Shown piece after piece: positions 28,836-57,622 of a stretch of DNA of 64,000 nucleotides (positions within the stretch are counted from its first letter, which is position 1; each line of letters begins with the position of its first letter). Both the position numbers and the translations under genes were made by a program. The DNA is from Trichoplax adhaerens (taxonomy: Eukaryota; Animalia; Placozoa): assembly GCF_000150275.1 (NCBI RefSeq), contig NW_002060987.1, positions 23,926 through 87,925 on the forward strand, read 5' to 3'. The notes beneath the pieces are model-generated. The model did not search any database, was not told the origin of the DNA, and was given only the letters and a program-made list of their open reading frames with translations.

Positions 28836-29039
28836 CTGTAGAATCAGAACTTTAGAATTTAGAACTTAGAATTTGGTACTGTAGCAAATCATCTTTGCAC
28901 TGTAGACTGACCATGCCGAACGGTGAGGTGATTTGGATACGACAGATTAACTTGATTTCACTCGTACAGATCATAGCTTGAAAAATAGATTCCGTTTTCG
29001 GTAGAGCATACAATATTGTCAAGATTCTATATTTCAACG

Positions 29040-31040: not shown

Positions 31041-32664
31041 TTCAAGAAATTGGAAAATCTTCTAAGTTTTTAGATAAAATGAAGCTTCGGTGAACGTATA
31101 TTGATAGATGCTTTTTACCTATTTGAAAGTAAAGTATGTTTATACATAATTATAGATTGCCCGTAATATGTAATATTTAGATTGTACTACAGTGTAAATG
31201 TCTTACTACAGGCATTTAATATTGTTCTTAAATTCTGATTTGGTATCTATTGTATCTAATGCTACGATACTATTTCCTGCATGCATTCTATTCCTAAAGC
31301 TCTAAATACCATCGCTTTCCGCCTTAGAAATCATTAATTACAATAGTTACAATGTTCGTATTTCCTTACGTTACTTCACGACAGTTTACATACTGCTCTA
31401 CTGTAACTACCACATTGTGCACCATTATCGTCTACAATAAAGCCACCTTTTCTTCTTCATGCTAAAACCCTTGTGTATTTCTCTGCATCGCAACTAAATC
31501 TGGTACTGGTGACTCATTGAAGCCTCCATCACGAACGATAGTTCTAAGAGGAACTGTTACTGCTTGCTTTTGCTTTGGATTAAATCGTATTTAATCGTAT
31601 TACAAAGCAGAATATTTTAAGATCGGAGAATGCTCATCTTTGTCGCATATAAACTACTCCTGTAATTACGCGTATGGCTGATAGAGCTACTGTTGTAGCC
31701 GATAGTCACACAAGTCAATATCTCAATTTGTGTAACTCGAATTTTGTTCCAAATAACTGTTAATAAGTTCAATTAATGCTTGATTGAATATCAAATAAGA
31801 CTTAAAAATAGGTAAGCCAGTGTTGGGTTAATGAATTAGCTTCCGGTTAGAATTACTAGTACTGTATATTGTCGATTAGTACGGTATACTGTCATTTACT
31901 GTACAGTAGTTATACTATAACTAGTATGAAATCTGTCGCGTTGCTGACGGATGAACACCTTAATTAGGAATCTGCAAGACATTGAGATTTTAGATGCTGA
32001 TTGTCTAAAGCTACTGGTAGTAATGCTATCCTGAACTGCCTCTTTGCCCAACTGTTGAATAACACTGTGCACTTATTTATACATTTGTTAGCAAGAATAT
32101 AAAATTCAAGAACAATTATAGGGCGGGAAGGTGAGATTACAAATCCGTCCGTAATCGGTCCGAAATACGGTACTGACGTATAGTGTACAGTACTGTATAC
32201 TGTATAGTGTTAATAGATACTGTAGATCAAAATAACAACACTGGTTCTATCCAATCTTCGTGAATTAAAGTTTGCTACTGTTGCACTCTTCCAAGTTGGT
32301 TCTAACCTGATCATTATTGTTATTATTACCTGGTAATCATTACTTTTTCTACTACTGTATCGATGAATTGGATAACTAGATACTGGAACTAGATACTGGA
32401 ACTGAGCTGTCTTTCTCTTCCTTTATGGTAATTATGGTACAGTGGGATTGATGTTGAAATTATTTTTATTATTCAGATTAATGATAATATCAGTTATCCT
32501 TCCAAGAATGCATTGAAATCCAGTTGATGTCGATCCAATTGATGTATATTGCAAAATTTCAACGCCTTGTATGCTTAGAATAGGATTTACTTAGGACAAT
32601 GCTATATAAAAAAGACACAGGCTCAAGGACCTAGTAAGATAAACCAGCTCAGTTAAGATCGACC

Positions 32665-35600
32665 ATGTTTTCAAGTAGAATTGTCGCTGCTGATTTTTAC
32701 CTCGCCAAACCCATTCAAAAATTGGATGCATGTTACTCGGATTTTCGACGATGCCCAACCAAACGAGTTCCGGTCGTTCGAATATTTGGTGCTACACCGG
32801 CTGGCCAAAAGACTTGCCTTCATGTACATGGCGTTTTCCCCTATCTTTATGTCCCTTATGATGGTAGTCTGCCTGTTAGTAAATACTTATTAGAGTTTGC
32901 TAATAGCATCGATAAAGCTATTCATGTCGCTACCGGTGTCAAATCAACCGATCAGGATACATCGAATATGGCTTGGCAACAAGTCGTTTTTAAAATAGCC
33001 ATCGTCAATGGAATGTAAGAATCAAATTGATTACTAATAATGTGCTACAGGTTTCTATATGGTACTATCGTAAGACTAATGTATTGTATATTACTGTCGT
33101 GTTCTTTACTTGACTACTGTATCTGAAGTGCATACTTCAGTGCAGTTTGAAAGAATTTCGAGCAAACTGCTATTCTAGACTCATTTTGTTATTGCTATTC
33201 TGCAGGCCCATGTATGGATACTACAACGAAGAAAAACAGTTTATGAAGATTTATTTATATAATCCAAATCTAGTAGGGAAGTAAGTTAGAACGATCTCGG
33301 ATAGTTTTGTGTAAAAAGGATACCAAGTACAGACATGCAGTTACTCTGTGCTTCATATATCGAATGTAATATGCTCGCTTCTTACGCTTCAATAGGCTAA
33401 GGTAAAGAGTTACGTTATGTTCTTTGCATATATGGTACCCATGACATTGAGCTAATGCCACTTTGAGTCTTTCTGCTGCGTTGAAAGTTGCAGAATAGAC
33501 GATAATAATAGATAGCAATTCTAATCAATCGTTCACTTTACCTGTAGTTACATGAAACGTTAGACCTTCGTATTAAGAATGGTAGACAACTTTTGACCTA
33601 GTGAACTGATATTTATTAATTATTGTAACAGGGTTGCAGAGTTATTATTAGCCGGTGCTATCATGAATAAAGTCTTTCAACCGCACGAATCGCATATTCC
33701 ATTCATTTTGCAAGTAAGTCACAATATGACTCAACTGATTGTATTGGAAAATGGTTGCTTAATAACATTAATGATGATTCCAGTAAATATCAGTTAAGAA
33801 TACTTACTAATTTTTGTGTTGCAGTTTTTCATCGATTATAATTTATATGGGATGAACTTAATCAAGCTTGCTGTTGTTAAATTTCGCGCCCCATTGAATG
33901 AAGATAGTGAGTATTTCAGAATTGATTTAGTACTAATCGATTTCTAATCGGCCATAATAGGATAGTTTTCTCAGCATAATAAATATCGTACCAAATATTA
34001 TAGGCATTCACTATATTAGCCCTGTAGGTGAAACACCTCGTACTCCCATGATGTCTTCCTCGGCAGTAACTGGATACTCTCCTTATCGTAGCCCTGGACA
34101 TAGAATTTGGAACAACGCATCCATTCCAGCGTAATTGACTAGCATTGTATAGTTGTTTTAGTCTTTTGCAGAATGTCATTTACTAATTCGTGATTTGTAT
34201 TGCCATGATTCCATCTTTTGATCGTATTAATGTTTCAAAAATGTGTCGATAATTAGGAATCTGATGACATCATACGAAGCTGAACGAATGAGTACTTGTG
34301 AACTGGAAGTCGATTGTGTTGCTGCAGATATTATTAACAGGCTAGACTTGGAAGGTGACTGTAATTAAAAGGGCTTTCATTATCTTGAATTTTGATAATG
34401 TGTTTCTGGTGTTTAAGCTACTGTTTAAAATTACTATCTAAAACTTCCATCTGTATTTGGCATAGCTACAAAGGGAATAAATCCTGGTATTAAAGCAATA
34501 TGGGATGACGAAATTCAACGTAGAAAGAATAAAGGCGAATCCTCACAGCTAACGCCGCCGGCTTCTCAAGGTAAAATTGATTAAAGTGACCATTAGTTTG
34601 TCTATTTTTCGTGGTGTAATTATTAGGTGCTATGGCAGTGGTAATGAATGTTTAACATTACTTTGTTTTCATTTTGCAAGAGCGCTGCCCAACTTACGAA
34701 GACTCATCTGAAATAGAATTTAAAAGAATAGTTGCTGCAGCGATTAAGCAATTTGAAAATGAGCAAAGGTAGCGAACTGACAATTGTATATCTGACGAAA
34801 TTAGCATATGTTCGGTCTAGGTAATTTATTGGAAACTTGTTCAGCAATCTTCGTATAATGTGAACTTTACTCGGTTATGTTTTAGCCAGCAGGATGCGAA
34901 TGTCAGCTTGGATAGTGATCAGTTAGAATTATCGCAAATCGGTTCTACCCCTTCCTGTCAAATTGAGATTCACTCGACAAGTTTGAACTCCAATAAAGGT
35001 ATTGCTAGCTGTAGGAATAATATAAAATTAAAACATTGGGCAAATAATTCTTAAATTATGCAGCTTTGATATAAATTTTTGTTGTGAATCCGGACTTTAG
35101 AAGTCAACTCCATAATTGAGCATACTGACTCTGCGATCAATGATAATGCTGTAGGAGAAACTGACGTATCTTATCGGCGTAAGATCCTCCGTTAAACTTT
35201 TGTGTCTATTATTTATTACTAACATGTGTTTGTGGTATGCAATTATATGGTAAACTTTCGAAAACTTGTCTTTATAGGGTCCGAAGTTTCAATGGACTCT
35301 GAACTGGTGGATCTTTTAGCCCATCTTGGCAGTAGTAACGACACTAATAGCCTATTTAGCAGTAGCCAATTAAATGATATAAATTCACAAGATGAAGTTA
35401 GCATTTTCAGCGGAAGTGGTAGAATGGAAGTAGATGCTAGTAAAGAAGACAATGAATTGATAAAATGTGATGATGACGATGAAGCGTTGTTAATGTCGCA
35501 GATTTGGACGTTAGATGCTTTTAACAATAACGATACTGTTGTTAACACCGGTGTACAAAGGTAAATATCGTGTCTCAAATTACTGTTGCTTTGCATGCTT

Positions 35601-38600
35601 ATCCAATGCACATTGTTTTTATTTTGCTAACGGTCAATCGAAAGGTGAAAAATATAACAATTCTGTGTAATTTGTCTAGTATTGCAGTAGACAGCGAGCG
35701 ATCTTTTTCGTTTGTGGAAGAAAATACGCTTATAGAACAAGTTGATGGTGAGGATGATTCTGATAAAGAAGTAGAAAAGAATACAGCAAAATCGTTAAAG
35801 TTAAAATCAAATCGAAAAACTAACGAATGCGGTAATTCTATGACAAGAAATGTGAGCGGTACCACATCAGGTTTGAATATTTTACTAACCTAGTCTAGCT
35901 GATGTACTATTACGTAGTCACATATATTATTGTACCCACAGTGAATGAGTATAATACATTGATCCTGAGCTAAGATAGAACGAATACTTCAGTACAATTG
36001 TAATACTGGAGTTTGTATCCTAACATGGCTAGAAATGGAATTAGGATTAATTGAGCGCTTTCCTACACAAGCTGTGATTATTCCTATAATAATTTAGAAA
36101 TTTTGTGTATAGATGTTATTAAATCTAAAAGGAAATATATAGTCAACGATGACCAAATGGAAACGAACCTGACAAACGTCAAGAAGAAAGTTGCAAGAAA
36201 TTTATACAACGACTTTTCTGTTGATGAGAAAGCAAGAAAGACGGAAGAGATTACGGTGAACCAATCAAATAATTCCTCAGAAGTCATAAAACATGGAACG
36301 GAGATGAAAGTTAATTTTGGTTCCAATTCTTTTTATATTTACTTAAATGATATGGGCATTAATACCGATACTTTAGGTTATGAATTGAAGACAGCTAATA
36401 AAATAGAATCTAATCAAGAAGAATTAGTGAAGAATCTTTCAGCTGCTGTAACACCATTTGTGCAATGCAACCTTAACAGCGAGAACAATCTGAGCAATGA
36501 TATCGATCATACTTTAATCTCAGAAAATAAGTTATCGGTTATCGAAGATACTATTAGCCACGATAAGATTGGAGAAAATAGAAGTTTCGTTGACGATAGT
36601 AGTGATATCGAAACAAACACGTGTGATGTCTTGTATAAATTATCATTTTTATCGCCTACTTACCCTATGAGTCCTACCGAGACACCACCAAGACCATCTA
36701 CTCCAGATTTTGGTATAGATAGCTTAGCAGTTGGAGGTTATGTGGATGTTGACAGATTGAATGATATGCCACTGAAATCAAATGAAAATAGCGCATCTTT
36801 TGTGTCGGTAAAAGTGGAAAGACAAGATGATGATGCTTCTGGCAACTTTGATCTGCGTCCTGGCTTAGACAGCACAGTTACTGAAACATCAATAGAATTA
36901 AAGCCAGCCAAAAGTTCTCTACCAGTAGCAGTATCAGCTATTACAAATGAAGATAAACTTCAAGTAGTTAAGCTGGATGTACGACCTGGATTCATCAATG
37001 ACTGTGAAAGTGCTCAGAAGGAGATAGATGGAGGCGAAATTTCGGGGCGATTATTATCTATGACGAAAGATTGCGAGGACGTCACGGTAGCGATGGAAAT
37101 ACCATCAAAAGAAGATTTTGATACACAGAAGAATCTTCAAGCTACGATAGGACATAGTTCTTCGTCAAATCCGTATGATTATGAAAATGATGCAGAAGAG
37201 AAGGGAAAGATGGAAAAAAATGTTGAGAATTTTCTTGTAAATTATCAGCAATTAAAGGATGTTTGTGATAATTCACTGAAAGATCAATGTAATGTACTTA
37301 AATATTATTACAATCCACCGCAGCGACATGAGATCAGTAGTACTCTATCAGACTACGGGCTACCTCATGCCAAGTATCAAGAACCATTTTATAGCAACGC
37401 GGAAGACTTACCAAATATGTCTATGTAAGCGAAGTACATATTAAAGAACGATGTTATATCGACCTAATGTTATGTAATGATTCTAGTTTAACTAACTCTG
37501 CTTTTTGATTTTTCTACAGGGAAGTAGGGAGTATGGCGTTAAAAGTCAAATCATGTATAGTAAGTATGGTATCATTTTCAATTGTTGTTCTAAATAGATC
37601 AGATTGTTGATAATTTTTTTAATAAATTGGCAGATAGAAAATCTGACTGAATTTGATACTGGGTGCTCGCTTTCGTTTATGTTGGGTTTAAATCAGTGGC
37701 AATCTATTCTATTTATTAATCATCCAAAAGTAGATGAAACATTAGCCCATTTAGCATGTCGGTCTTTACCTGATATAAGTTACGAGATGCATAAAAATTT
37801 TATTGCTCGCGATGCTATCCTTGGCGATAGAAATGTTATAGTTATCCCAAGCCTAGAACCTCCAACACGAAATAGCGTTGAAAAGTGGATAACTGATAAA
37901 AGTTATGGTATCAAACGAAAGCAATCTTGCATCGTAGACGTTGATAATCTGGACTCCAGTGTAGTTGGCGATGGTGCTAAAAAGCAGAAATCTGTTCAGT
38001 TTGACAAAATATGTCATCAGGTGGGAGATTTTACGCAAGACCCTTCAATGATTAGTGCTATTCTCAATGAGAGTACGCGTGAAAGCTCATCACCCGCCAG
38101 TCAATTATCTACAAGTACGAAAAATTTAATCACTGATAGTGAGAAGTTCCTGATTCCCTCCCCTTGCTCAAAATCTTCGTTATCAAATTCACCTAAAACT
38201 GGATCAATAACTGATAATAAACCAATGGTTAATATTGCTGGAGACGCGTACGTCAAAGGAGATTTTAATTGTTCTCCTCGCACACCGCTTAGTAAGGAAT
38301 CAATACATGACAATAACCTCAAATTTAAACCAAAGGATAGAATATTTACTGCCACTGAAATGGTAAAAGAGTTACGCATTATTTTTTTATCGTAATATTA
38401 TCATGTGAATCAGCGTTATACCTTTTGCTTCGATAAATCATGCTAGGACTCTGTACAGAAGTTTGGGCGTCGTTTAGCTGCAGATTCACAAATTGAAGGC
38501 CCATCTCCAAAAAACACATATGACTTTCGTATTAGCCAACATAATCCAGACACTGCGAAGGCTGTTCATGAAGTACATTATTCTTGCAATTGACAAAGTA

Positions 38601-41600
38601 CTTGGTTAGACTGTAATTAATTTGAGTTCTGTTTATTAATAAGTACAACATCTAACAATAATGAGCATAGAATTGCATATAGAACGAGAGCGAAGCTAAA
38701 TCCTGATCCGGAATGTGATCCAATACGCGTATTATTCTATCATTTATATCGTGATATTCCACGTAGTTCACATCTTAAGAATTCCTTTTCTGGTATGATT
38801 ATTGTTGATCCAAGCCTGTACGACAGGGAGAGTTCAGTACAAGCTGATTCAAAAGGATCATTCGATATTAAATGTAACGATTCAATTACGCTATGTGAAG
38901 GTTTCAATTCTGATGATAGTTTATTCACGTCTCCTGATGAGAAGAAGTCTAATCGTAGCGGTCGTGTAATGGACGTATTAAATTTAAGTGGTAGAAGTAG
39001 AATGCTTGATAAATGTGGCGTGACAAATGCTTGGGTAGAATATGTACCTGATGAAGATAGCCTTTTGAAGTCTTTAGGATTAGTTATGAAAAGGTGCCTA
39101 TTAGTAAATTTAACAAAATGTACGATATTAAAATTCCGGATTTTGATATCGCATCCGGCAGCATGTTAATTACCTTGCAACTGACATTTAGATGTTTTCC
39201 TTCTTTAGTTATAATTTAGTTTCATAAACAATTTTAATTACAATTGTTATTTGTATGTATAGCTGGGATCCGGATATTCTAATTGGCTATGAGATTCAAA
39301 TGCTTTCATGGGGCTATGTATTCGACAGAGCTAAATTTTTGAAAATCGGTTTAGCGCCTAGATTGTCGCGTATTCCTGAACAAAAAATTAGATCCCAAAT
39401 TGAGTTAACTGATAATTCACTCGCTCGTTATAAAACAGACTTATTTGTAATCGGTAGAATTTTATTGAATGTGTGGCGAATAGTTCGAAGCGAAGTAAGT
39501 TTTACATGTAATAAAATGTACTGTTTTGACGATTGGGTAAATGGTATGCTATTCATGTATCATTAAGGATAATGGATAACCATTTTAATTGACTTCAGGT
39601 TACATTGAATATTTATACATTTGAAAATGTTTCATACCATGTATTACATCAAAGGGTGCCTCATTATTCCTTTGAAACATTAACGGAATATTTTAATCAA
39701 GACTCTCACAGGTAAATGCGAATATCTGTTAAAATCCTATAGGATATAGGCGTTAGTAAGCCAAGAGTAGATTTGTACATTTTCGGTATGTAATATCTGT
39801 TGGCTCTTATAGGTGGAAGACAATTGAATATTATCTAATGCGCTGTCGGAGCAATTTTTTATTGTTGAATGAATTGGATACGGTCGGTTTAACTAGTGAA
39901 TTTGCAAGACTTTTTGGAATTCCGTTTTATTCCGTTTTATCAAGGGGAAGTCAAGTAAGACTGGAAAAGCAATATGAACATCACATTAAAAACACTATAT
40001 CGATCTTATGGGATACACAGAATGATATCTTCTCCAATTTTAATAATTTAGTTCCGAGTAGAATCCATGATGTTGCGAATTGCAAAGCCGATGAATTATA
40101 TAGCAGTGTCACCAAGCCCTGATCAAAGAGCTATGTATGTAACAGGACTGTTCTAATTTTTATGTATTATAATTAATCTAACTACGATTTCAGGATGAGA
40201 GCTCCGGAAGTGATATCCTTGATTTTGGAGCCTGAATCTCGTTTTTACTCAGATCCGGTTGTGGTTTTAGATTTTCAGTCCTTATACCCATCAATAATTA
40301 TAGCTTACAATTACTGCTTTTCAACTTGCCTGGGAAATGTCAAGAATATTATCACGTTCGTGACGCACAGCAATATCTTAATCGCAGATATAGTTGACTA
40401 TTGTATGAAAACTAACTATAATTAAGTTTATCTATAAATTAATCTGCGTATTTTTAATATTGATAAAAGAGACGAAAGTAGGCAATTTGGTTGTACTACA
40501 TTGCGTGTACCTTTAGCAACCATGAAGGTAACGATCGTGCACTATTTTACTTCATGTTTTAATCCTCACTGTTATTTATCTGTATTACATTAGACTTTTG
40601 TTATAAACTAATTGTACAGTATTAATATTGACATGTATAGAAAATTAAAGAAGACTACACTGTCTCACCGACGGGACTCGCCTTTGTTAAAAGTAACATC
40701 CGTAAAGGGGTACTACCAAGGTACAGTAGTAGCAATGCAACATTAAGGGAGCATAACTAACGTCATTGCTAGCTGCTATTGATTTATTTACTATTTGCAA
40801 ATGATATAATGTAGAATGCTAGAGGAAATCTTAAATACTCGTGTTATGGTAAAAGGAGCTATGAAAAAAAACAAAGGAGATAAGGTAAGTCTGCCATTAA
40901 TACATCATATTACCTTGCAAGATTTGGGTTATAACTTTAGATCGACGAATTTTGGCATTAGGCCTTAGAACGTCTTCTAAATGCGAGGCAGCTAGGATTG
41001 AAATTAATTTCTAATGTGACTTATGGTTATACTTCGGCCAACTTTTCAGGACGTATGCCTTGTGTTGAGGTTATTAAGCATTAGATAACAAACCTTTTAT
41101 GATCTTGACACCCCTAAAATGCTACTATTCTTACATTGTAAATTAAGACATGAATGCAATCTTAATAAATGTAATTTGGAATTGAAGATTGGCGATAGTA
41201 TCGTAGCTAAGGCTCGAGAGACTTTAACCCGTGCGATACACTTGGTAGAAAATACTCCCGAATGGAAAGCAAAAGTTGTTTATGGAGATACAGATAGGTA
41301 TGCTACTATTTCTTAGTTGAATCAAGTAAGTACAGTAGCTAAATGTTGAAACTCACTTGATTTCAAACAGCACTAGGCAACTGAATATTTTCTGTTTTTG
41401 CATACGTATTGTGTAGCATGTTCATTTTACTTGAGGGTGCCACTAAGGATGAGGCCTTTCGTATTGGTAGAGAAATTACGAAACGGGTTACGGAACTAAA
41501 TCCTGTACCGGTTAAATTAAAGTTTGAAAAGGTCTAAGTTACTTTCAGTACTTGCGTACGAGATGTTAGTCTAGTATTATTATTCTAAGTACTAGCATGT

Positions 41601-43317
41601 GATAATATTATTCATATGCACTGTTTTTATTTAAGTATATAGACTAAATGTTAAATAATCTTATTTAATATTATATATTTTATTTAGGTGTATTTGCCAT
41701 GCGTACTACAAACGAAAAAACGCTATGTTGGATTTGCATATGAAAAAGAAGATCAATTTGAACCAATTTACGATGCAAAAGGAATAGAAACTGTTCGCAG
41801 AGATGGCTGTCCAGCTGTTGCGAAAGTATATATATGTCTATTATCATAAAGAACTTAATTGAGGAGGCTGTATTAATTATGCAATCTAAATTGTTAACGA
41901 GAATATTTTTATCGCTGTCTACTTTTCAGATATTAGAAAAATCTATCAAGATGTTATTTATGCAACGAGATGTATCATTAATAAAGAAATTTGTATTGAG
42001 GCAATGTCAAAAATTAATTGATGGTAAAGCCAGCACAAAAGATTTTGTTATCGCTAAAGAATATCGTGGGCGTAGCTCATACAAACCGGGGGCTTGTGTT
42101 CCCTCATTGGAGATCTCAAAGTAGGTTCAACGGAGGAATATAGCTCACAGTTACGGATGATAAATAGTACTAGCTGTTAATGCAAAGGATATTGAAACTA
42201 ATGAAGTGTTCTATATTATGAAACTTTAGGAAATTACTAGCTACTGATAAGCGGGCTGAACCGCGAGTTGGTGAACGTGTACCGTATGTTGTGGTATATG
42301 GAATGCCCGGCTTGCCATTGATACGTTTGGTTCGAAGGTAAAGGAGTTAATACAGTAATAGCTGCTCTAGTTCGTCAATTATAGTATTCATTAAGTCGTT
42401 ATATATTTTTAATACTGACCGTATTTTTGGCTACTATGATAGGCCTATTGAATTCTTAAGCGATCCAAGTTTAAGGTTAAATGCAGCATATTACATTACG
42501 AAACAAATTCTTCCCCCTCTTAATAGAATATTTTCGCTTATCGGTGTCGATACAAATGCATGGTGAGCAATTCATTGCGTAAAAAGTTACCTTCATAAAA
42601 TCCTACGTTTAACAATATTATCTAAATCCTAGTCATATAGCATAATTATATTCGAATATATTATAAGTAGTTAGGTCTCTTTTTAACTTGATAAACGTAA
42701 AATTTGAATTAGACATTTTTTACCTTGCTTTGTTCTATCTTTTAGGTATAATGAATTACCGAGATCCCTCCGTTCGGCGGCTTTTGTCCCTCAAAGTAAC
42801 GATCTAATTCAAAAGGTTTGTCTTTGTCCTCATAATACTTATAAAGTTGTTGATTATCTATCAATTCGTTATTAATAGTTTATATGTGAACATTTTAGGC
42901 CACAATCTCTCAATATTTTAATAGTTTAAGATGTCCTATATGTGAAATTGTTACAAATCATGGTATTTGCTGTAAATGTCAATCTGATCCTCAGAAGGCC
43001 ATTTTATTAATACAAGATCGTCTACGCTTGATGGAACGTGCTCATTGCAAGATGAAGGAGGTAATGATCTTAAACAGTAACCGGTATACCATTAAATGAT
43101 TCAAATTAATCATTTGTGGTACTTAAATTTATTGTGTACTAAGTAGATCATTATCATTTCATAGTTATGTTATCAATGCATTGGGGTTCGCCTTTGTGAT
43201 GTCCAATGTGAATCATTGGATTGTCCTATTTTATTTAAAGTACTGAAGGCAAAGCACGAATTAGTACAAGCTTCGCATTTACGAAAAGTGATTGAAGTAT
43301 TTTCTAGCAGAAGTTAA
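32665..43317 (+). CDS. REV3L: DNA polymerase zeta catalytic subunit, copy 1 (apparent local lesions at 38643 and 38680)
   Basis: [84 protein letters not shown] (motif A), [15 protein letters not shown] (motif B), YGDTDS (motif C), KKRYVG, and C-terminal CysA/CysB clusters. Stop at 43315-43317. Confidence 0.92.
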
Positions 43318-44699
43318 GTTTTGGGAGTCACTAATTTCTTACATAATTTACTAATCTCTAGAAATGAAATTTCTAGATTAAATTATTAGCTCTTTAAGAT
43401 GTTTTTGTTTAATTTATATTATTGGACAGATAGGAAAATAACCTAGTTTGGCCAGTATTTAATCTAAGTCAACATTTTATTTTATATTTTAACTAGCCGA
43501 ATCCACACACCCAGTTGTGTATTAAACATATCTATTACATAGTCAGATCAGATCAATATTGGATCTAAAATTTTATTTAGAGCGGTAAAACCGCTTTATG
43601 CCTTGCTCTGTAAACTACATGAAGCATGTATCTGAATTACTGATGCATATTTTAGCATAAGGAGAAAGTAGTGCATGCGCTACCGTGCTTCTTATCTCAT
43701 AGGGCATGCATTTATTTTATTATAAGAGCAATCGATTCATCGAACGTTCTACCTAGTGTATTTCCAGTTAGCTTAATTGTTTGGCTAATGAAATAATTTT
43801 GTCAATATAATGTTGATGTACTGTCTATTTATTGTTTCCATCTTCATTTTAATTATGTCACTATATCTCCTTTTATATTATTTGTTAATTATTATTTATT
43901 TATTACTTCTCATTTATCAAGATCATAAAATTATTTTCAGCTTCTCAATATGTGTAGATCGTCTAGATCCTAAATTACTCGACTTCTTAATGATCTCAAT
44001 ACTTGAAAATAGCTTTACTACTAATTAAAATCATTTGCAGTTTCGATAGGCACATCGCCTCCATCGTAGGTTACTCGTCTACTATATTATCTCCATACAT
44101 GAAAATAATCTTGCAACTATTGGAGATCGTCGAATCTGTAGGAGTGTTTTGATATGTACTGTAGTTCAATATCCTTTTCATATGACTAATTTGACAAGGA
44201 GGTACGAAGTGCCTTGTGGTGTTTGCTATAATCAATTTTTGTATCATTTAAAGTCAGTTACAGCTGCTTGACCCTGATGAAACTTTAACCCGAATAATTG
44301 TAACCGGTTAAAATGAATTCAGAATTGATTGTGGTAGACATGACTAGAAATTTCGTACCTTGATGAATATCAGAGGAACGGTACATATTTTTTTGTTTAC
44401 TTCAATACTTTAGAAAGTAAAGACATGAACTGTCGTTACGGTACGGTATAGTGCTCGAGTAAGAAGAAAAAGTTTCTTTACTTCTATGACAGCACCATAG
44501 ATGCACAAAGAAAATGCCTTAGAAGTTAGAACTTTGAATAGGGCGTAGTTTTTCTTGAAGTGCAGGAGAATGAAAGATACTTAACTGGTAAACTACAGCC
44601 TTGATCTAGCCTAGACTAAGTCCATGATTATGAATTAGATGTATTGCCTATACTGTAAGACCAATTAATTAATTATTCGATCCGTCATTTCGTTCCGGA

Positions 44700-44800
44700 T
44701 ACTGTCAACTACAGTGCACAGTACTCTAATTTACAATACATTTTACTGTACAGTACTGTACTAAACGTGAGCATGATTAAACGTACAGTACAGTACTGTA
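44700..44800. repeat. TACAG/CTGTA cluster upstream of REV3L copy 2
   Basis: TACTGTACAGTACTGTAC and GTACAGTACAGTACTGTA. An equivalent patch precedes copy 1 at 32170-32225. Confidence 0.65.
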
Positions 44801-45197
44801 TTTCGAATATTACAAATACTACCTAGCCAAATCGTGGAGGCCATCATCGCTGATTAGAGCAAGGCTGATTTCGTTGTATAATATATTCTTCATGTTATTG
44901 GGCTATTTAGGAATCCTTGATATTGTTAAGATATAGATTGATCAGAGGTAGAATAATTGTAGTATTAACGTATGGTGAAATATTGCATCAATGGTTCTAC
45001 TGTATTACCAGCCTTTTAAGGTACAGATAGATGGAGGTCCATGAATTGCAAGAAAGGAAAATTAGTCTCCGATTAAACCTTGGAGTAGCAAGCCAACATG
45101 ACAGTCGTGACTTATTGTAGAAGTGTTCAGGTGTCCAAGATTGACAGCAAATAGTCATTTCTTGGAAGAGTATTCGGAATATTAATCCGTTGCCATA

Positions 45198-48100
45198 ATG
45201 TTCTCAATCAGAATTTTTACTATCGATTTCTATATGAGTAGACCGGTGCCTAAGCTGGATGTTTGTTATTCACCATTTCGTAAGACATCGGTCAAGCGTG
45301 TACCTATTTTGCGAGTATTCGGTCCAACACCAGCTGGTCAAAAAGCATGTTTACACATTCATGGTGTTTTCCCTTACTTATACGTTCCTTATGATGGCTC
45401 ACAACCTGTTGATAAGTACTTAGAAGAATTTGCTCTTAGTATTGATAAAGCAATTAACGCCTCAATGAGTGAGTCTAATGCAGCTTCCAGTAATTCGTGG
45501 CATCAGCAAACGGTCTTTAAAATATCGCTTGTTAATGGAGTGTAAGTATTTCATTTTTTGTGCATTTTAGTATCCATTTAGAATATGCTTTCGTTGTACT
45601 TGGCTTATGTAGGACAGTACTTGGGATGAGATATTCCTAACTCATATGATCGAGTAGGTTATTGACAATGTCCAATGTACAGTACTGTACTTTATATAAC
45701 ACTAGTAACGTTTGACCACTGATGATGTCATTGTTGGCAAATTTCATCCATTCTCTTTCATAACTATCATATGATATAGGAAGCTAAGTACAGTATAGTT
45801 ATGTTTGACTGTAACTCAATTTTCTTTGGTTCGATAGGCCAATGTATGGTTATAATCCAAGCCCTAGGCCCTTTTTAAAAATTTACATTTATAACCCTAA
45901 CCTGGTGGGCAAGTATGTGAATTATGTGACTTTGCATAAGTGCAGTATGAATTAAGATAACTTAAACTCATGCTATAGAATATATTTTTTGCAGTGCATA
46001 TTCACATGAACGTATAGTGCAGTTATTACTGAAGTGATACAAAGTATTAAAATTAGCTACGCTCTCTGGGCTACTGTAATGCATCATTCGTAATTGAACG
46101 CATTTTCATTAATAAAACGGTATTGATCTTGAAGAATTGCAGATTTGCTCTTAACTGGAGCTGTCATGAATAAAGTCTTTCAACCTCATGAAGCTCACCT
46201 GCCATTTACATTACAGGTAAAAAGATATAAAGTCTTTATATGGTTAATAGTGAAGATAATACTTCATCTTTCTCATTCAGTAATGTACTATTGCAATGTT
46301 ATCACATTCGAAATTTAAATGTAATCCCACTTTAAGTTAATTTAATGGAAAAATGCGCACGATATCATTGGATCTAATGCTGTAATATATATGTTCTCTC
46401 ATGCATAACGTTATAAACAACTCATCACTAACTCCGAGTATCTCTAAAACAATACACTGTATGGCACTGTACTGTATCTTATATATACTTGAGATTTATA
46501 ATTAAAGCACTACAAAATAATTACTGTTATAGTAGACTAGCATTATGCGATGAAAATAGTCCACGTAATTTAGAAAGTTATAACATAACACCATGTGGTA
46601 TCTGCTGTGGAAATCTATTAATACTCATAGGTTTTGTATGACGAAGTAAAAACAAATTAAAATGGAGTGGATAATATAATTGATGGAACTGGCCCTTTAC
46701 CTTTATTTTTGGCTTAATATTATTTTTCCAAGTTTTTCATCGATTACAACCTCTATGGAATGAATTGGATTAAGTTAAATGCCGTAAAATTCAGGATAAC
46801 GGATGATATACAAGGTAGCACTGCTCTGAATTGATATTTAGCGTAATAAAATATGCGAGATAATTTGTAGCCAAGGAAATTCCTTTCGTTTTCCTTACAG
46901 ATATGATGTCATCAGAGATGACCGATTTATTCGTTGTGGATAATTGTTCCTTGCCATCGACTGCTCTACAACCTTATCTCACTCCAGGTGAAAAGATTTG
47001 GAACAATCAAACTATCTCTGAGTAAGTAATACACTATAAACGACTAATACTTGTTAATGCAATATCCGGCTTGTGCCTTGGTAAAAGCTGTGTGTTAATT
47101 TTTATTGTTAGTCCAAGTTAGCTAGATAATGTGATATTATTTTAATATTGCTCTATGGAAATTGATATAATTAACTATCGTACTACGTGTTAGTTAAAAC
47201 GCTATAAATCTTTTGCATGAACAGGCAAGATTGTTTAAGTGAATTAGAACGTACCAGCAGCTGTGAAGTAGAAGTCGATGCTGTTGCGGCTGATATTATC
47301 AATCGGCATGATTTAATAAGTATGTATCTTATGGCTGATAGAGCCATACTGTTCACTATTAGATCTGAACAGTGCTTTCTGCGTAATTAGATCAGGTTGG
47401 TATTAACCCTGGAATTCAAGCCTTGTGGGATGATGAACGACAACGACGACATGATAGAAATGAGTCTTCTCAGTTAATAAAAAATCCTTCCCAAGGTTAA
47501 CCTTACTTTAAGAATTCAGCTTAAAAGTGATACTGCCACTTATGAGAACATCATCCTTAGCATCAGGGTGATCATCAATAAATTCATGCATTTTTGTGAT
47601 TATATAGAACGAGAAGATCCTGTTGTTTTAGAGACTGAACAGCTTTTCCTGAAGCAGATTGATAAAATTATCTATGGTTATGATGAAGCACTTAAGTAGG
47701 TTTGCAATTTTTTTGTATTTGTTACAAATTTGTTACTTGAACGCACTTTGATTTACACTAAAGAGAAGCAATTTCTACAACAGGAATGAGAATTACGTAA
47801 AAAAAGATGATTCTATTCAAGTCAATGTAACTGCAGCATTAGCTTTTGGGAACGATGCTCATACGATTCAGTCTGGTACATTTTTGTGATTAATTAGATG
47901 TTATAACGCCTTTATGATCGACAATATTTTGAAGTAACAAGACAGAATCTTTGACGATACGCATATTGAAATTGGATATTTTATGCAATATTGTTATTAT
48001 TATTAATAAAGATTCGTTAATAATATTCCACTTGATTAGACAAAGACAGTTACGACATTTGTCAAGCTGATGACAGCCAGTTTGTTAAACCATCTGAATT

Positions 48101-51100
48101 AAACTCAAGTTTGAATGAAACTATAGACCTTTACGAAGGTACTTGTATATTGTTCCTTGCCGACGAGAAATGCCTTGTTAGCTGGATAAATTTAACCGCT
48201 TCATTACTTTACAGATGAGGGCTCTATTGATCCGGATCTAGTCCAACTTGTTGCAGGTTTGGCAGACGACATTTCTAGTAGTCAAATATGTGAGACCATA
48301 CCTGATGATGGCGAAGTTAGTGTTCTCTACGGTAGCGGTGCTATTAATGACTCCATGTCTGACGAAAAGCTGCGGTTGGAAAAGGAGGAATTAGAGGAAA
48401 GTCTGGAAATGTCTCAGGCGTGGAATTGTAAAAGTACCATTACAGAAAACTTGAACGATTCGTAAGTATTGCATAAAGTCAATGCTACAAAATTAGATTT
48501 ATTTTAGCCGCAAAGAAAAGTACTTCTACTTGAGTACCAAGAATTACGTACTTCTGGCATATTATGTTATCAAAGATATGCTTATTAACCTAAAGCCATT
48601 TTAATTTTGTAGGTTAAGCTCTCAAAATATGTTATTTACTTCTCCGGAATCTACCTCTGGCGATGCAAGTCATATATTCCAGCTAGATGGCGCAGACGAT
48701 TCTTCGTCAACGGAGAGTCTAGAAGATGCTGCAAGTGATTTATCAAGTAATGACCAACCAGTTACGCATAAGTTAGCAGATAGTTTGACCAAATTGAAGA
48801 GAATTCGCAGGAAAAGCTCGGTAGTCAACCAGATGGTGGCATCTATACCTGTGACTCCAGGCAAAGATGATAAATCGTTAGACATTCCGCATCGATCGCA
48901 ACAATCCGATCATGAAAGTAAAATAAATCGCAAAAGAAAATTGCAACCAATAGTAGCCGTTGCACAAATTATTTCTGGTAAAGGTAATACAAAATTACCG
49001 ATCGAATCAACTAATCAGAAAGTGACGTCCACTGCTCAAACAGATGATGAAAAAAGCTTAGCGGTAGCAAAGATAAAATCTGTACCAGTTCTCAAATTTT
49101 TAGATAAGAATACAAAAACTGATATTTTTGACGGAACATTCGATTCTCAAATGAGGGATGAGTTGGTAGTTGATGATATGCAAAGTTTAGAAAAGTCGGA
49201 TCATTCGTTAAGCGCGAGTCAGGTACAAAGTCCTAGCAAGAAATTAAAGGGACAAGGTATTGACGATAGGACAATGAAAAGTTGTGATTTTAATTTTGAT
49301 GAACAAATGAGAAGAGATTTTCGTGTTGATAAAAACACCGCTAATATTCATGGGAAGAAACAACCTTTAGCAACTCAACGTGGTAACGCGACATTGATGC
49401 GCTATTTTAGCAAGGTCACAAAGGTGCAACAGGACGGTCATTCTGAGGTGGCAACCCCGACCAATTTAAATCAAACTTTAGGAAAGCAGGATGACATAAC
49501 CAGTACAATAAATGATACTTCAAATACGACTGCAGTAGCATCAAATGCAAGTAATGACGAAAATTTATTGCATAGTCCAGCTGAATCATTGCTATGGTCA
49601 TCTCTTGGCTCTGGCAGTATTACATTTCCTACCTGTAATAATAGGACTACGTCAGAAGATGTCATGGTCAACTTATCATTTCCGTCTCCAATACATAGCT
49701 CGCCTAATAGTAATACACCGCCATTAGCGAATTCTCCGAATCAACATAGCAATACCAGCGATAGCTACTTTGTTGGAAGGGCAGCATCGCAAATAGGAGA
49801 GAATATGCATCATCATAATGAAAGTCAACTTGAATTATGTGAAAGTTTAGAGCCGTTGTCTTCATTTGGTTCAGTTCGTGAAGGTAATGATGCTCATGAT
49901 ACTACATTAGATTCTGATATTCGGCCAGTTTTGACCAGTTCCCTAGAAGATAAGAAATCACAGCTTTCGAGTGCTCTACCTGTGAAAATTCAAACTGATA
50001 TTAGTTATAGGAATCTCTGCTACAGGTTAATAAAAGAACTTAACTGAAAATTCTACATTTATCTATTTTGTATTTCTCTACCACAAAAGATATCTTTTTA
50101 CGACAAATTGCTTCTTTAATAGCCTACCTTTAAATGAATCTGGTGTTTGGAGACCGAATTGCGATCCACCGTCAAAAGAAGATATCTTGTCAACTTGCTC
50201 ACAAGTTGGTGTACTAGGGGCTAAATTTGTTGAACCATATTGTAGTGAGGCGGTAGATATACCTCGGCGACCAAAGTAAGATTTATTTGAGAAAGGAGTA
50301 TTTAATGTTAAATCCAAATAAAAGTCGAAGAATACGGTAGTGTTTCAACGTGTTTATGCATGTATTTAAATTATTACTTAACTAAATAGCATCATTGTAA
50401 TTAATGTGTACAGAGAAATTCAAGGCCGATTTTTGAGAGTTAAATCAGATAAGGTTAGTTGTGTGAGTTAAAATGTTATAGACGATTGGAATGCCTTAAG
50501 CTTATACGGTATACTTCGCTTGCTCTTTCAAATATGTAACTTATATTGCACCTGGCCTTGATGGAAAGATTTCAGAGCTACCGAAATTCGAATCTGGAAA
50601 TAATAACACTGTATATATTAGTGGCTTAAGCCATTGGCAACTTATTTTAAGCAATAGCATTCATCCGTACTTACGTCATTTTATGAAATCAAGTTACAAT
50701 GACTTAAATTATGATCGTAAAGTGCCGAAGGAAATCCTCCCGGTAATTAACTCTGTGCGTAAAGCGGATGCAGTTATTACACCCTGTAAAGGTCCACCCA
50801 CTAGAAAATCTATTTGTAATGACATCGAAAAGAGATGGAAAAGTAGCAAAAAGGTAGTCAAATTAAGTGCGTCGACAGAATCGAAAGAACAGTTTTTACC
50901 TGAAGACTATTCGATAAACGTAAGTAATTTTAATATATTTCGGTCATTATAAATTTTACCTTACTTTAAACATCGGTGCCGTTTGTTTGTATATGCTATT
51001 TATTTAGTTTCAAGATGATACCAGAAAACTGAATCGTGTTAGGGGTCTCGATACACACGATTGTGATCTTGTGATACGAAGTAGTTTTCACAATCCAAAG

Positions 51101-54100
51101 GATGGAAAAGCTTCACGAGAGGTTTTTTTATCGTAATACTCTTCAATGATAATTAAATTAATTAATATATAATATAAATGCAGCCTTCGATGAGTTCAGC
51201 TTTAATACAACAGTAATGTTTTTCAATTAGGTTGAACATTTAACGACTTTAAGTTTGGAATTACATATTGGAACCAGGAAGGATTTGTCTCCTGATCCAG
51301 AATTCGATTCAGTTTTGGGGATATTTTATCATGTTCATAGAGATATTCCTGATGGTGATGCCTTAAGGAAAGAGATTACAGGAATGATTTTGGTCGATAC
51401 GAAATTGCAGAAGGTTCCATCATCCTTGCATGAGCATGATGAATTGAATATAGCTGATTTGGGTTTGACTAGCACACAAAAATCAGCGACGATAGATAAC
51501 GACCCAACAGTAGAAGAGGAACACCGCTCAAGTAGTAGCTTCAGGTCTCGTAAATCCCAGTACCAGAGACAATTGCTCGCGAGATGTGGTGTGAGTGATG
51601 TGATCGCAGAATATGTAGCGGATGAAATTTCCTTATTGCTAGCACTTGTTAGACTAATCAGAAGGTCATTATATATTTTAATCATGCTTACTTATGTTTT
51701 ATCCAGCAAGGCTAAATGCGATCTACACTGTTCTTTTCAGATGGGATCCAGACATCTTAGTCGGGTACGAAATTCAAATGTTGTCTTGGGGGTATTTGTT
51801 GCAGCGGAGTAAAAGTCTTCAAATCGATTTAGCGACTTTATTATCTAGAGTTCCATCTGTAAATAATAAATTTCAACTGGAGTTGGAAAATGATTTCCAG
51901 GCTAACTATAAGACTGATGTATTCATTGTTGGTAGAGTAATAGTCAATATTTGGCGTATTATGCGTTATGAGGTAGTTGTTCAAATTTTAGAACTAGCAA
52001 GTGAGGGAAGATCTTGAGATGGTTATCTATTTTGCCAGGTCGCGTTAAGAAGCTATACTTTTGAAAGTGTAATAGACCATGTTTTACATCGCCGACATGC
52101 ATTACATACTTTTCGCTCTTTGACGGATTGGTTTCATGATGATAGAAATCGGTAATTCTATCGTGATATTTAAGTTTAAAGTTCACCACATCGGCTGTTT
52201 TATATGATGACTATTTCATTGTAGGTGGCGCACCATAGAATATTACATTATTCGATGTCGTGGTAATTGGCGACTACTCGAAACCTTCGATATGATTGAT
52301 AGAAGCAGTGAATTCGCTCGGCTCTATGGTATTCAATTTTACTCTGTCCTTTCAAGAGGGAGTCAGGTATAAGTTAAAGCTACAGTTAACAAAATTTAAT
52401 GGAATGCAATAGTTGCAATTCTGTACCATGAAGTGTAAGGACTAACTTAATATCGTTTAGTTTCGTATTGAGTCGATGCTTCTTCGACTGGCGAAACCGA
52501 TGAATTATATTCCGGTGTCGGTTAGCGAGAAGCAGCGAACTTGGTAAGTTGATACTAGCACTCGATGTCGTCGAGTTTGGCTTTAACAATTTTTATTGCT
52601 ACTTGTAGTATGCAACTCATATGCAGTATATTAGGTATTTAAGCTTTAGATCAATTTAAAAGTTTCGTAAGATATTCATAGACAAGGCGTAAAATCATGC
52701 ATTTTGCGTACATGTAGGATGAAGGCCCCTGAAGTGATTCCATTAGTTATGGAACCAGAATCACGATTTTATTCGAATCCTGTGTTGGTTCTAGATTTTC
52801 AATCTTTATATCCATCTGTGATGATAGCATACAATTACTGTTATACCACTTGTCTTGGCCGCATTTCTGGAATTGCAACGTAATATGCATTTAATCTCAT
52901 TAATCGAAATTAATAATTGACAGGGCATTATCTTATAAATTTGAATATATTTAACACAATATAATAAATGTGTTTATAGGGATAAAGAATTTAAATTTGG
53001 CTGCACATCACACCAAGTTCCGTTGTCTTTGCTAAAGGTTAGCATCTAATTTGACGCCATGTGGATAAGTATTATTGCTACATGACTAACTTATCATCCT
53101 ACTTTAACGTGTATGTAATTGATATAGAAGCTACGAAATGATATAAGCATTGCACCATGTGGAGCAGTCTATGTAAAAGACCATATTCGAAAAGGCGTAA
53201 TACCGAGGTAAAAATGTTATATCCGTTTAAGTGCCTGTTAGCATTTATTTAGAATTTAATTGATTTAGGCTTTATTAAAGTTATGATTACATAGTTATAT
53301 ATATTTGCCGTATTGTTAGAATGTTGAAAGAAATATTAGACACACGTATCATGATAAAGCGAGCTATGAAGGATTGCAAAGATAATAAGGTGTGTATACG
53401 TACTTTATGTTGATCTTTTCTAAGCGCTTATTCTCAGTAGGAAATAGCTTGAGCACTTCGATTTTATTTCGCATTTAGTCACTTCATCGCCTCCTCGATA
53501 TACGACAGTTTGGTTTAAAAATGATAGCTAACGTAACATATGGGTATGCAGGGGCAACGTTCAGTGGTCGAATGCCGTTAATCGAGGTTTATGATAAGAT
53601 AGGTTTAGTGTAGTACTTTAGCACTTATAAGTTATGAAGGTATAGAAAAATCGCTTCTTGTTTGCATTTTTAATAGTTAGCTGACAGTATCGTCAGCAAA
53701 GCACGCGAAACTCTAGAACGTGCTATTAAGATTGTCAATACGACCAGTAAGTGGAATGCCAGAGTTGTATATGGTGATACAGACAGGTAAGTTTTTAGTA
53801 TGTCTTTATGAAGAAGTATAAATGAGCTAATAAACCAGAAACGTAACTTTGCAGTATGTTCGTACTGCTGGAGGGTGCAACCAAAGCTAGAGCTTTTGAA
53901 ATTGGTCGAGAAATTGCTGAGACTATCACATCTATGAATCCCAAGCCAGTAGCTTTAAAGTTCGAAAAGGTCTGCAAAATTAAAAAAATATATATTTATA
54001 AAATAAATATGAATAAATATTTTCGTAATTTTGGTGTCCAAATACTCTTTAGTTATTCGATGCTAATTTAATATTATGATTAGGTGTTTTTAAACTGTGC

Positions 54101-55917
54101 CATTCATCCACGGTTGATCTTAATGTCTTATAATAATATATTTTAATTGAGTTGGATTCATTATAAGCAGTAATAGGGTATTTACTATCTGTGTTAGGTA
54201 TTTTTACCCTCACTATTAATAACGAAAAAGCGGTATGTCGGCTACGCATATGAATCTGCCGACCAGAAAGAGCCTACTTTTGATGCTAAAGGTATCGAAA
54301 CTGTTCGAAGAGATGGTTGTCCTGCAGTGTCAAAGGTTATTTATTTATTAATTAATCCTGTGGCATTTCTGTAACTTTTAAAGATTAATTGTAAAAGGTC
54401 GTTGAATTATTTTATTTTATATTAGATCATGGAAAAAGCAATTAGGATACTATTCTCTAGACGTGATATGTCACTTGTCAAGAAATATGTATTGCATAAG
54501 TGTCGAATGCTTATAGAAGGCAAGGTCGCAATTAATGACTATGTTATCGCTAAAGAATATCGTGGCAAGAGCACCTACAAGCCGGGTGCTTGTGTGCCGG
54601 CTTTAGAAATCACCAAGTATGCTACTTGAGTACATATGATGAAATATCATTATAGTTTTCGCTCTAACTAGATAGTAGATTTTATCATAGTTACCAAATA
54701 AAAGATTTTGACGCTATGCATATGATTCTTTAATAGGCAGTTGCTGGCTCATGATAGACGATCAGAGCCTCGTATTGGAGAGCGCGTGCCATACGTCATC
54801 GTCTACGGTGTACCTGGAGTGCCATTAATTCGTCTCGTTAGAAGGTATCATGTACAGTGTATATACATTACTTATAGTTTAAAGAATTTTATGTTTTATG
54901 CAATAGTTGAAGTGTAAGCTAATAATTCAATTTATCGATTGTAATGCTGTTTTAATCAAGTTCTCTTTCACTTATTGGCTAGACCACGTGAACTTTTAAA
55001 TGACCCAAATTTACGCCTTAATGCCACTTATTACATCACCAAACAAATACTGCCAGCTTTAGACAGATTACTGTCTCTAATTGGCATTGATGTTGAAAGC
55101 TGGTATGAATGATGAAATGATTTGTTTTATTAATATTTTTATGTGACGAAATAATAGGACATAGAAGCTGTACTTACTGTATGCTTGGCGTTACCGTTAG
55201 AAACCGCCAATTAATTAATTAAGTATTAATACAGGCTCTAATCATATTCTTGAAACATGGATTGTTTGATTTTATTAGGCATGCTGAACTACCCAGATCC
55301 ATTCGATCAGACGTAATTAACCAGAGTCAGTTTCAGGTGGCAAAGGTATAACTGTAAAGCCACCCATAGGCGTGTTTATGTTGTATTGTACCTTTTAAGC
55401 CTACAACTATGTAACTTCCCGTTTTCGTGAAATTTCGTTTTACAGCAAGGGGTAATTTCACAATATTTTAGCAGCTTGCACTGCCTAGTTTGCGAGGAAA
55501 TGACTGTTGATGGTGTTTGCCCTTCGTGTATCCGAGATTCTCAAAAAGCAATCATGATTGCCCAGCAACGGATATCAGATTTTGAGAGAAAAAATCGTCA
55601 TCTTAAAGAGGTTGAACCTTTAGAAAATAGTTCATATTTGTATCAGTCAAATCTATTATGAAAAAAATGTATTATATGAAGGACGTCTTATTTGATTTCT
55701 AATTTGCTATTTATTGTGTTTGATTTCGTAGATATGCTGCAATTGTATTGGTCAACGTGTGATTAATGCTGAATGTATCTCTCTGGACTGTCCAATTCTG
55801 TTTGAAACTAAGCGAAACCAACGAGATGTTGATTGCATTCCGCGTTTGCGTGAATTTATATCGAAAATATCCACGATTGCTTGTAGTTCTATCGCTGAAG
55901 CACAAATTACAGGGTAA
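45198..55917 (+). CDS. REV3L: DNA polymerase zeta catalytic subunit, copy 2
   Basis: [101 protein letters not shown] and CCNC..CISLDCP. Intron positions parallel copy 1. Stop TAA at 55915-55917. No frameshift found while tracing exons. Confidence 0.93.
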
Positions 55918-57249: not shown

Positions 57250-57622
57250 NNNNNNNNNNNNNNNNNNNNNNNNNNNNNNNNNNNNNNNNNNNNNNNNNNN
57301 NNNNNNNNNNNNNNNNNNNNNNNNNNNNNNNNNNNNNNNNNNNNNNNNNNNNNNNNNNNNNNNNNNNNNNNNNNNNNNNNNNNNNNNNNNNNNNNNNNNN
57401 NNNNNNNNNNNNNNNNNNNNNNNNNNNNNNNNNNNNNNNNNNNNNNNNNNNNNNNNNNNNNNNNNNNNNNNNNNNNNNNNNNNNNNNNNNNNNNNNNNNN
57501 NNNNNNNNNNNNNNNNNNNNNNNNNNNNNNNNNNNNNNNNNNNNNNNNNNNNNNNNNNNNNNNNNNNNNNNNNNNNNNNNNNNNNNNNNNNNNNNNNNNN
57601 NNNNNNNNNNNNNNNNNNNNNN
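57250..57622. other. Assembly gap
   Basis: Run of N. Confidence 1.

Follow-up and report, generated by a model that had tools for sequence, protein, structure and literature searches.

Two paralogues of REV3, the gene for the catalytic subunit of DNA polymerase zeta (Pol zeta), lie side by side in the 64,000-nt stretch of Trichoplax adhaerens DNA analysed here (contig NW_002060987.1, positions 23,926 to 87,925 of the forward strand; assembly GCF_000150275.1). This stretch is referred to as the window and all coordinates are positions within it. REV3 paralogue 1 (g1) occupies 32665-43317 and REV3 paralogue 2 (g2) occupies 45198-55917; both are on the + strand in head-to-tail order, run from ATG to stop, and are separated by 1880 nt (43318-45197). 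This spacer, which carries no strand assignment, consists of the g1 3' untranslated region (UTR), continuing to at least about 43918, and the region upstream of g2. A reading made from the letters of the window before any search (the sequence-only reading) had described two head-to-tail genes about 1.9 kb apart with common intron positions, and both descriptions agree with the spliced models. The order and phase of 33 of the 34 introns are common to the two genes, exon phases are equal in 34 of 35 exons, and 15 consecutive exons of the polymerase domain have identical lengths, while the single differing intron is situated in the fast-evolving linker. Both frames open with MFS.RI a few codons past an in-frame stop and close at proper stop codons, with 55917 as the final base of the g2 stop codon.

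Spliced models were generated with a dynamic-programming pass, after which the donor/acceptor pairs of each junction were scored against eight full-length REV3 homologues. The joined models were used for BLAST, MAFFT, phylogenetic trees, and estimates of the ratio of nonsynonymous to synonymous substitution rates (dN/dS), and database searches were queried exon by exon. The g1 model encodes 2157 amino acids, including one read-supported base, in 35 exons on the + strand (32665-33014, 33206-33280, 33632-33713, 33825-33906, 34028-34130, 34257-34354, 34466-34570, 34681-34768, 34886-34998, 35101-35178, 35278-35560, 35680-35870, 36098-37424, 37520-37559, 37697-38362, 38447-38572, 38643-39093, 39263-39494, 39599-39711, 39813-39954, 40052-40134, 40194-40355, 40470-40527, 40641-40720, 40815-40884, 40962-41069, 41188-41297, 41417-41531, 41688-41825, 41930-42120, 42230-42337, 42443-42562, 42746-42815, 42899-43060, and 43165-43317). 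Its splice choices are guided by homology and, for exons 15-35, by RNA contigs; exons 9-13 stand as modelled from homology. The g2 model encodes 2049 amino acids, likewise in 35 exons on the + strand (45198-45541, 45838-45912, 46135-46216, 46733-46814, 46901-47021, 47225-47319, 47391-47495, 47608-47695, 47784-47875, 48040-48138, 48215-48461, 48613-50025, 50123-50275, 50414-50453, 50569-50919, 51008-51121, 51231-51664, 51741-51972, 52039-52151, 52225-52366, 52461-52543, 52718-52879, 52980-53037, 53128-53207, 53320-53389, 53479-53586, 53677-53786, 53855-53969, 54198-54335, 54426-54616, 54737-54844, 54983-55102, 55279-55312, 55446-55610, and 55732-55917), and draws on homology, the splice signals of an orthologous contig, and the share of its sequence held by RNA runs. 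The orthologous contigs, L003 for g1 and L006 for g2, come from a second placozoan-like lineage introduced below. Exon projection found the splice signals of the g1 model kept in L003, and both predicted splice signals of g2 were present at 32 of the 34 exons with a projection onto L006, where exon 1 (which starts at the ATG) needs no acceptor and exon 35 (which ends at the stop) needs no donor; the donor of g2 exon 15 could not be projected, and no counterpart of exon 33 was detected.

Pfam searches assign both genes to REV3. Each begins with REV3_N followed by POL3_N, with REV3_N matches (E 7.7e-21 in g1 and 5.8e-21 in g2) well above the family cut-off of 29.9 bits; in g1 the first exon (32665-33014) holds REV3_N (PF24065) together with the start of POL3_N (PF24055, E 3.7e-7). 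Profile searches of the whole assembly (105.6 Mb in 1414 contigs) matched REV3_N only at the g1 and g2 loci, and the remaining loci of the family-B polymerase profile PF00136, pieces of which are above cut-off in g1 and g2, sit on a different contig (C1414). DNA_pol_B_exo1, DNA_pol_B, and zf-C4pol were also matched in both genes. Motif A (DFQSLYPS; 40270-40293 in g1, 52794-52817 in g2), motif B (K[LM]I[SA]NVTYGY), and motif C (YGDTDS) are intact in each copy, and an intron interrupts motif C at an identical point in the two spliced models (41281-41417 in g1, 53770-53855 in g2). All eight cysteines of the CysA and CysB clusters (C-x2-C-x9-C-x4-C) are present in g1 (42932-42979 and 43168-43224) and g2 (55482-55529 and 55735-55791), where the individual zf-C4pol exon matches fall below the whole-domain Pfam cut-off, the domain being split by an intron. 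The exonuclease-like domain (PF03104) is represented by the strand MSIELH in g1, after correction from reads, and LSLELH in g2; both resemble other REV3 proteins and do not have the Exo I catalytic Asp, the position at which Pol delta has DIE. At 226 columns that are nearly invariant among 35 other REV3 proteins, g1 differs at four and g2 at seven, mostly conservatively. These scans bear out the earlier claim of a full-length REV3 with N-terminal domain, polymerase motifs, and both Cys clusters in each copy, and they show two predicted proteins that are intact and complete in their catalytic and metal-cluster motifs.

The organization of both copies is that of human REV3L and yeast Rev3 (PDB 6V8P and 7LXD): a REV3_N and POL3_N start, a long and poorly conserved linker with REV7-binding motifs, an exonuclease-like domain without the catalytic Asp (SIELH/SLELH), motifs A, B, and C, and the CysA zinc and CysB iron-sulfur sites. 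Both fall inside the animal REV3 clade, and the departure from REV3L/Rev3 is the presence of two long-lived paralogues in place of one gene. Vertebrate REV3L entries additionally carry DUF4683 (PF15735), which was not detected in the two large linker open reading frames (ORFs) scanned; no Pfam family was found in either ORF. POLD1, the catalytic subunit of Pol delta, has a common fold with REV3, a CysA/CysB C-terminal domain, and the accessory subunits POLD2 and POLD3. The POL3_N and zf-C4pol matches of the two window genes are likewise shared with POLD1, but g1 and g2 carry REV3_N and group with REV3 and not with Pol delta.

Despite the common architecture, the two copies are highly diverged. 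Translated comparison of 32000-44800 with 44800-57000 (tblastx) recovered about 32 colinear, + strand exon matches at 33-82% amino acid identity, while the nucleotide comparison (blastn) of the two gene regions returned only six exon-centred matches at 65-85% and the introns do not align. The proteins are 47.5% identical over 1887 aligned residues, a figure that falls to about 43% in the N-terminal part and rises to 55.6% over the C-terminal 906 residues. Across those 906 residues each copy matches coral REV3 at 56%, and thus g1 and g2 are as distant from one another as from the REV3 of other animals. Over 569 gap-free codons g1 and g2 are 64% identical in amino acids and dS is saturated, such that dN/dS cannot be computed between them.

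Orthologues of both genes exist in a second placozoan-like lineage that is deeply diverged from this species. Searches with single exons returned short ORFs on contigs of Logan runs SRR30664517 and SRR30664516 and of ENA metagenome assemblies. The 7.4-kb contig L003 holds the g1 orthologue (o1), with polymerase exons 84-94% identical to g1 and 58-75% identical to g2, and the 13.3-kb contig L006 carries a complete g2 orthologue (o2); both derive from the same run, SRR30664517. Exon 1 of the g2 type was found on L001, L002, and L006, at 80-82% identity to g2 and 61.5-62% to g1. No named placozoan protein was among the matches listed for the representative search with exon 1 or for the Hydra-seeded search, the second of which was dominated by vertebrate sequences. 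Nei-Gojobori estimates over the 569 codons gave 92.4% amino acid identity, a dS of 1.3, and a dN/dS of 0.034 for g1 and o1, and 89.1%, 1.9, and 0.030, respectively, for g2 and o2. Neither copy has the ratio near 1 that would be expected of a decaying gene; at about 0.03 in both orthologue pairs, the estimates show strong purifying selection on both copies. The view that the pair is neither recent nor haplotypic also holds up, with dS saturated, 64% identity even in the polymerase core, and a separate orthologue for each copy. It should be noted that ENA assemblies ERZ23498939 and ERZ23499115 (sample label SAMN08714533; contigs L001, L005, and L008) and ERZ27264358 (contig L002) contain placozoan-like contigs with orthologues of both paralogues, which suggests the presence of environmental placozoan DNA in the underlying metagenome samples.

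Phylogenetic analysis placed the duplication within the placozoan lineage. The tree set included g1, g2, o1, and o2 with REV3 sequences of plants (outgroup), five cnidarians, a sponge, an echinoderm, molluscs, arthropods, and vertebrates; homologue names were taken from cluster look-ups and the Hydra-seeded search, and the named neighbours are annotated as DNA polymerase zeta. The groupings (g1,o1), (g2,o2), and all four together each received 100 in the Shimodaira-Hasegawa-like approximate likelihood ratio test (SH-aLRT) in quick trees computed with posterior mean site frequencies (PMSF), and an LG+G4 tree with ultrafast bootstraps supported the same three groupings at 100/100. All placozoan sequences thus fall into a single clade inside animal REV3 and the duplication is therefore placozoan-specific; it is not shared with the sampled cnidarians or sponge, in contrast to what would be seen if duplicated REV3 were common among non-bilaterians. 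The stem of this clade measures about 0.2, the branches following the duplication 0.34-0.36 for g1 and 0.40-0.47 for g2, and the tips 0.05-0.12. Based on these lengths, the duplication is several-fold older than the split of the two placozoan lineages, and g2 is estimated to have evolved somewhat faster than g1. More than one REV3L per animal genome is also seen in Xenopus laevis (the L homeologue) and Sinocyclocheilus, where the copies arose by whole-genome duplication. Those copies are young, nearly identical, and located on different chromosomes as a result of polyploidy, whereas the placozoan pair is a local tandem with 47.5% identity that predates a deep species split. A search of the available literature combining Trichoplax with REV3L, REV3, or polymerase zeta found no paper on a placozoan REV3 duplication.

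The two copies differ in motifs that each lineage has conserved. Predicted REV7-binding motifs in the linker have the form hydrophobic-hydrophobic-x-P-x3-P-P, and two such motifs occur in cnidarian, echinoderm, mollusc, and vertebrate REV3, while sponge and insect REV3 apparently have one recognisable motif. Two canonical motifs are predicted in g2, the first (VWRPNCDPPSK, 50145-50177, + strand) conserved in L006 as WKPVFDPPTK and the second (AVITPCKGPPTR, 50770-50805, + strand) kept in the g2 orthologue. In g1 the second motif (37835-37870, + strand) is canonical and conserved in L003, while the first (37294-37326, + strand) is degenerate, with Tyr at the position of the first Pro of other REV3 proteins, and the same change is present in L003 (FKYFCNPPHR). 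The reverse pattern is seen at the point beyond the linker from which the N-terminal part is folded again. There, just ahead of the exonuclease-like domain, REV3 proteins from sponge to vertebrates carry the element SQIEGP[ST]..N[ST][FY].F, which is kept in g1 (SQIEGPS..N.Y.F, 38486-38527, + strand) and its orthologue. The element is replaced in g2 exon 16 (51008-51121, + strand) by ...GLDTHDCDLVIRSSF..., a replacement that is conserved in L006 at about 80%. The alignment to the yeast Rev3 chains begins just upstream of the SQIEGPS motif, and PDB sequence searches with the 42-aa and 38-aa exons that contain the motif or its replacement returned no match. Compared with other REV3 proteins, then, g1 is set apart by the Tyr in its first REV7 motif and g2 by the loss of an element found from sponge to vertebrates.

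Transcription of g1 was evident from assembled reads. The contigs compared with 37650-43649 stem from runs of four studies, three of them RNA and one (X2) DNA. A single spliced contig of 7561 nt from run X17 crosses every exon of this interval with all listed joints as in the model, and continues for about 3.4 kb more on its upstream side and for 269 nt past 43649, making it a near full-length g1 mRNA. Together, the contigs of X17, X18, and X19 reproduce all listed g1 joints from exon 15 to exon 35, and g1 is certainly transcribed and correctly spliced. The evidence for g2 is indirect. Over 45198-55197, DNA runs of several studies hold 0.81-0.87 of the sampled words, RNA-Seq runs X19 and X20 hold 0.43 and 0.42, and two probable RNA runs hold 0.47; the value expected of an intron-free g2 mRNA is 0.42, the product of the exon-only fraction of 31-mers (0.48 of the stretch) and the share in the best DNA holders (0.87). 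The fit of the RNA word share to a complete transcript without introns indicates that g2 is very probably transcribed as well, and the prospect that one copy is silent was not realized for either gene.

The reference sequence of g1 appears broken at the start of exon 17 (38642-38682, + strand), with an A at 38642 and one A missing behind 38682. Positions 38640-38646 read TAAGTAC and not TAGGTAC, and the reference reads GAACG and not GAAACG around 38680; g2 and the orthologues of g1 have AG/GT. across the exon 17 acceptor where reference g1 has AA/GT. (38641-38642). The extra A behind 38682 is present in all four runs, including DNA, and a G at 38642 in X19 and X2, and RNA contigs remove exactly 38573-38642, joining 38572 to 38643 in frame. 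Because the public runs and RNA contigs contradict the reference, g1 is intact and the reference carries two errors or rare variants, which would cause automatic annotation to call g1 broken or mis-spliced. A genuine exon 17 lesion (AG to AA at 38641-38642 with the 1-nt deletion near 38680), rescued by an upstream acceptor at 38627, was considered and is ruled out by the reads. About 30 single-base differences from the reference were seen between 37681 and 43580 in the runs of organisms A and B; several are common to all runs (e.g., 37758 G to C) and are probably further reference errors or strain differences.

An apparent structural variant is also present at g1. Contigs of X2 and of X18 (probable RNA), runs on a single organism from two studies, depart from the reference after 42995, in exon 34 just past CysA, and continue with a match, at one mismatch, to 44962-44991, which lies 236 nt ahead of the g2 start. 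No shared repeat was found in the reference at 42995 and 44962, and the X2 depth of 47.6 splits into 31.1 and 16.2. This may represent a deletion allele of about 1966 bp, making up roughly one third of the DNA, that ends g1 before CysB and removes its 3' UTR.

The sequence-only reading had called for the copy numbers of REV7, REV1, and POLD2/3, and profile searches of the genome found REV7 and POLD3 single and three B-subunit loci. The HORMA profile identified two loci, one of which is REV7 and the other of which reads as MAD2. REV7/MAD2L2 is a single locus matching human MAD2B/REV7 PDB chains at E 1e-72 and is encoded on the - strand by an uninterrupted 219-codon ORF (L009 1171-1827, equivalent to G000:C1404:1226519-1227175); its intronless coding part contrasts with the 35-exon REV3 genes. 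CDC27/POLD3 has one locus, the B-subunit family has the three expected for Pol alpha, delta, and epsilon with no extra, and the REV1_C profile gave only one match, below threshold. With REV7 and POLD3 single and no extra B-subunit locus, any two Pol zeta enzymes would therefore share their accessory subunits.

Taken together, it is likely that g1 and g2 are two functional catalytic paralogues of Pol zeta that go back to a single tandem duplication on the placozoan stem. This event would postdate the divergence from cnidarians, sponges, and bilaterians and long predate the split of the two placozoan lineages. The two catalytic subunits would most likely compete for the same REV7, POLD2, and POLD3 and form two alternative Pol zeta enzymes. 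The g1 enzyme would combine one canonical and one degenerate REV7 site with the ancestral N-terminal domain junction, and the g2 enzyme two canonical REV7 sites with a new conserved sequence in place of SQIEGPS..N.Y.F. A division of labour rather than simple redundancy may be proposed because the copies have been retained for so long, are as deeply diverged as REV3 genes of different phyla, and have kept their respective motif states in each lineage. The existence of two specialised placozoan Pol zeta enzymes is plausible. A further step is to suppose that these enzymes, sharing accessory subunits and distinguished by one working REV7 site and an ancestral N-terminal domain in g1 against two sites and a remodelled junction in g2, are distinct in how they are regulated, in their lesion spectrum, or in the cell types that use them, and contribute to an unusual tolerance of DNA damage. 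This is possible but rather doubtful. The link to radiation tolerance raised by the sequence-only reading found no supporting data, and the Trichoplax irradiation paper names induced repair genes without Pol zeta among them (PMC8635375).

The strongest alternative to this interpretation is plain redundancy or dosage, in which both copies fulfil one function in a single set of cells and the motifs have drifted apart neutrally within a disordered linker. The few changes at invariant columns (4 versus 7 of 226) indicate equally conserved catalytic cores, dN/dS is alike in both copies, the accessory subunits are shared, and sponge and insect REV3 apparently manage with one recognisable REV7 motif. 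However, fully redundant duplicates are rarely retained for so long, the copies are as far apart (55.6%) as either is from coral REV3 (56%), and the motif states have been kept per lineage across a split with saturated dS, including the roughly 80% conserved replacement of SQIEGPS in g2, all of which makes redundancy an unlikely, if still sizeable, alternative. A duplication older than placozoans (pan-metazoan or earlier), with one copy lost in all other animals, would fit the distance between g1 and g2, which is about the same as that separating them from cnidarian or vertebrate REV3, but it would need many independent losses and is opposed by a placozoan clade supported at 100/100 on a stem of about 0.2 substitutions per site, across three tree runs; the chance that it is correct is slim.

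Two alternatives remain. A pseudogene status or ongoing decay of g1 in this species, its exonuclease-like domain opening with a 1-nt deletion and without a working acceptor, is what the reference letters at 38640-38646 and about 38680 imply, as they break the frame, and the possible deletion allele would remove CysB. Yet the additional A in all four runs from four studies, the G at 38642 in X19 and X2, the in-frame splice from 38572 to 38643, the 7.5-kb full-length spliced contig, and a dN/dS of 0.034 leave this highly improbable. Least credible of all is an assembly artefact in which two haplotypes, or a collapsed or expanded repeat, were set side by side. Local reference errors do exist in the region, but nucleotide identity between g1 and g2 is just 63% in the most conserved coding part, their introns are unalignable and differ in length, g1 is colinear with an independent DNA contig of 12 kb, 0.81-0.87 of the g2 words are present in DNA runs from several studies, and the two copies have separate orthologues.

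Several observations weigh against the interpretation of two functional and ancient paralogues with distinct roles. Transcription of g2 rests on contig word shares with no g2 splice joints seen, and the possible deletion allele that truncates g1 in part of the DNA of one strain could mean that heterozygous loss of g1 is tolerated. The orthologue dS values of 1.3-1.9 are near saturation, making the dN/dS estimates rough, though far below 1. The second placozoan lineage is represented by short contigs only, and the sampling of non-bilaterians is sparse, consisting of five named cnidarians, one sponge, and two unnamed sequences, one grouping with cnidarians and one with the sponge. The g1 motif with Tyr at the first Pro may still bind REV7, and support for two enzymes is at the level of sequence.

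Other features of the window lie outside the two genes. A 674-aa ORF directly upstream of g1 (29016-31040, + strand) matched no Pfam family at E 0.001. The sole run of N in the window, an assembly gap of 373 bases (57250-57622), is located about 1.3 kb downstream of g2, and a strong local GC skew of 0.18-0.28 distinguishes 18001-22000 from the remainder of the window.

REV3 is essential and mutagenic, and to our knowledge it is treated as a one-gene function in animals outside polyploid lineages. An old, retained tandem pair is unusual for a gene that is normally single-copy in animals. For work on placozoan damage tolerance the pair is a concrete and testable candidate. The two REV3 genes, which strong selection has maintained from a time before living placozoans radiated, constitute a natural experiment, in that they separate features that are fused in every other Pol zeta, namely how many REV7 sites there are and the conserved motif at the N-terminal junction, and could reveal the roles of each.

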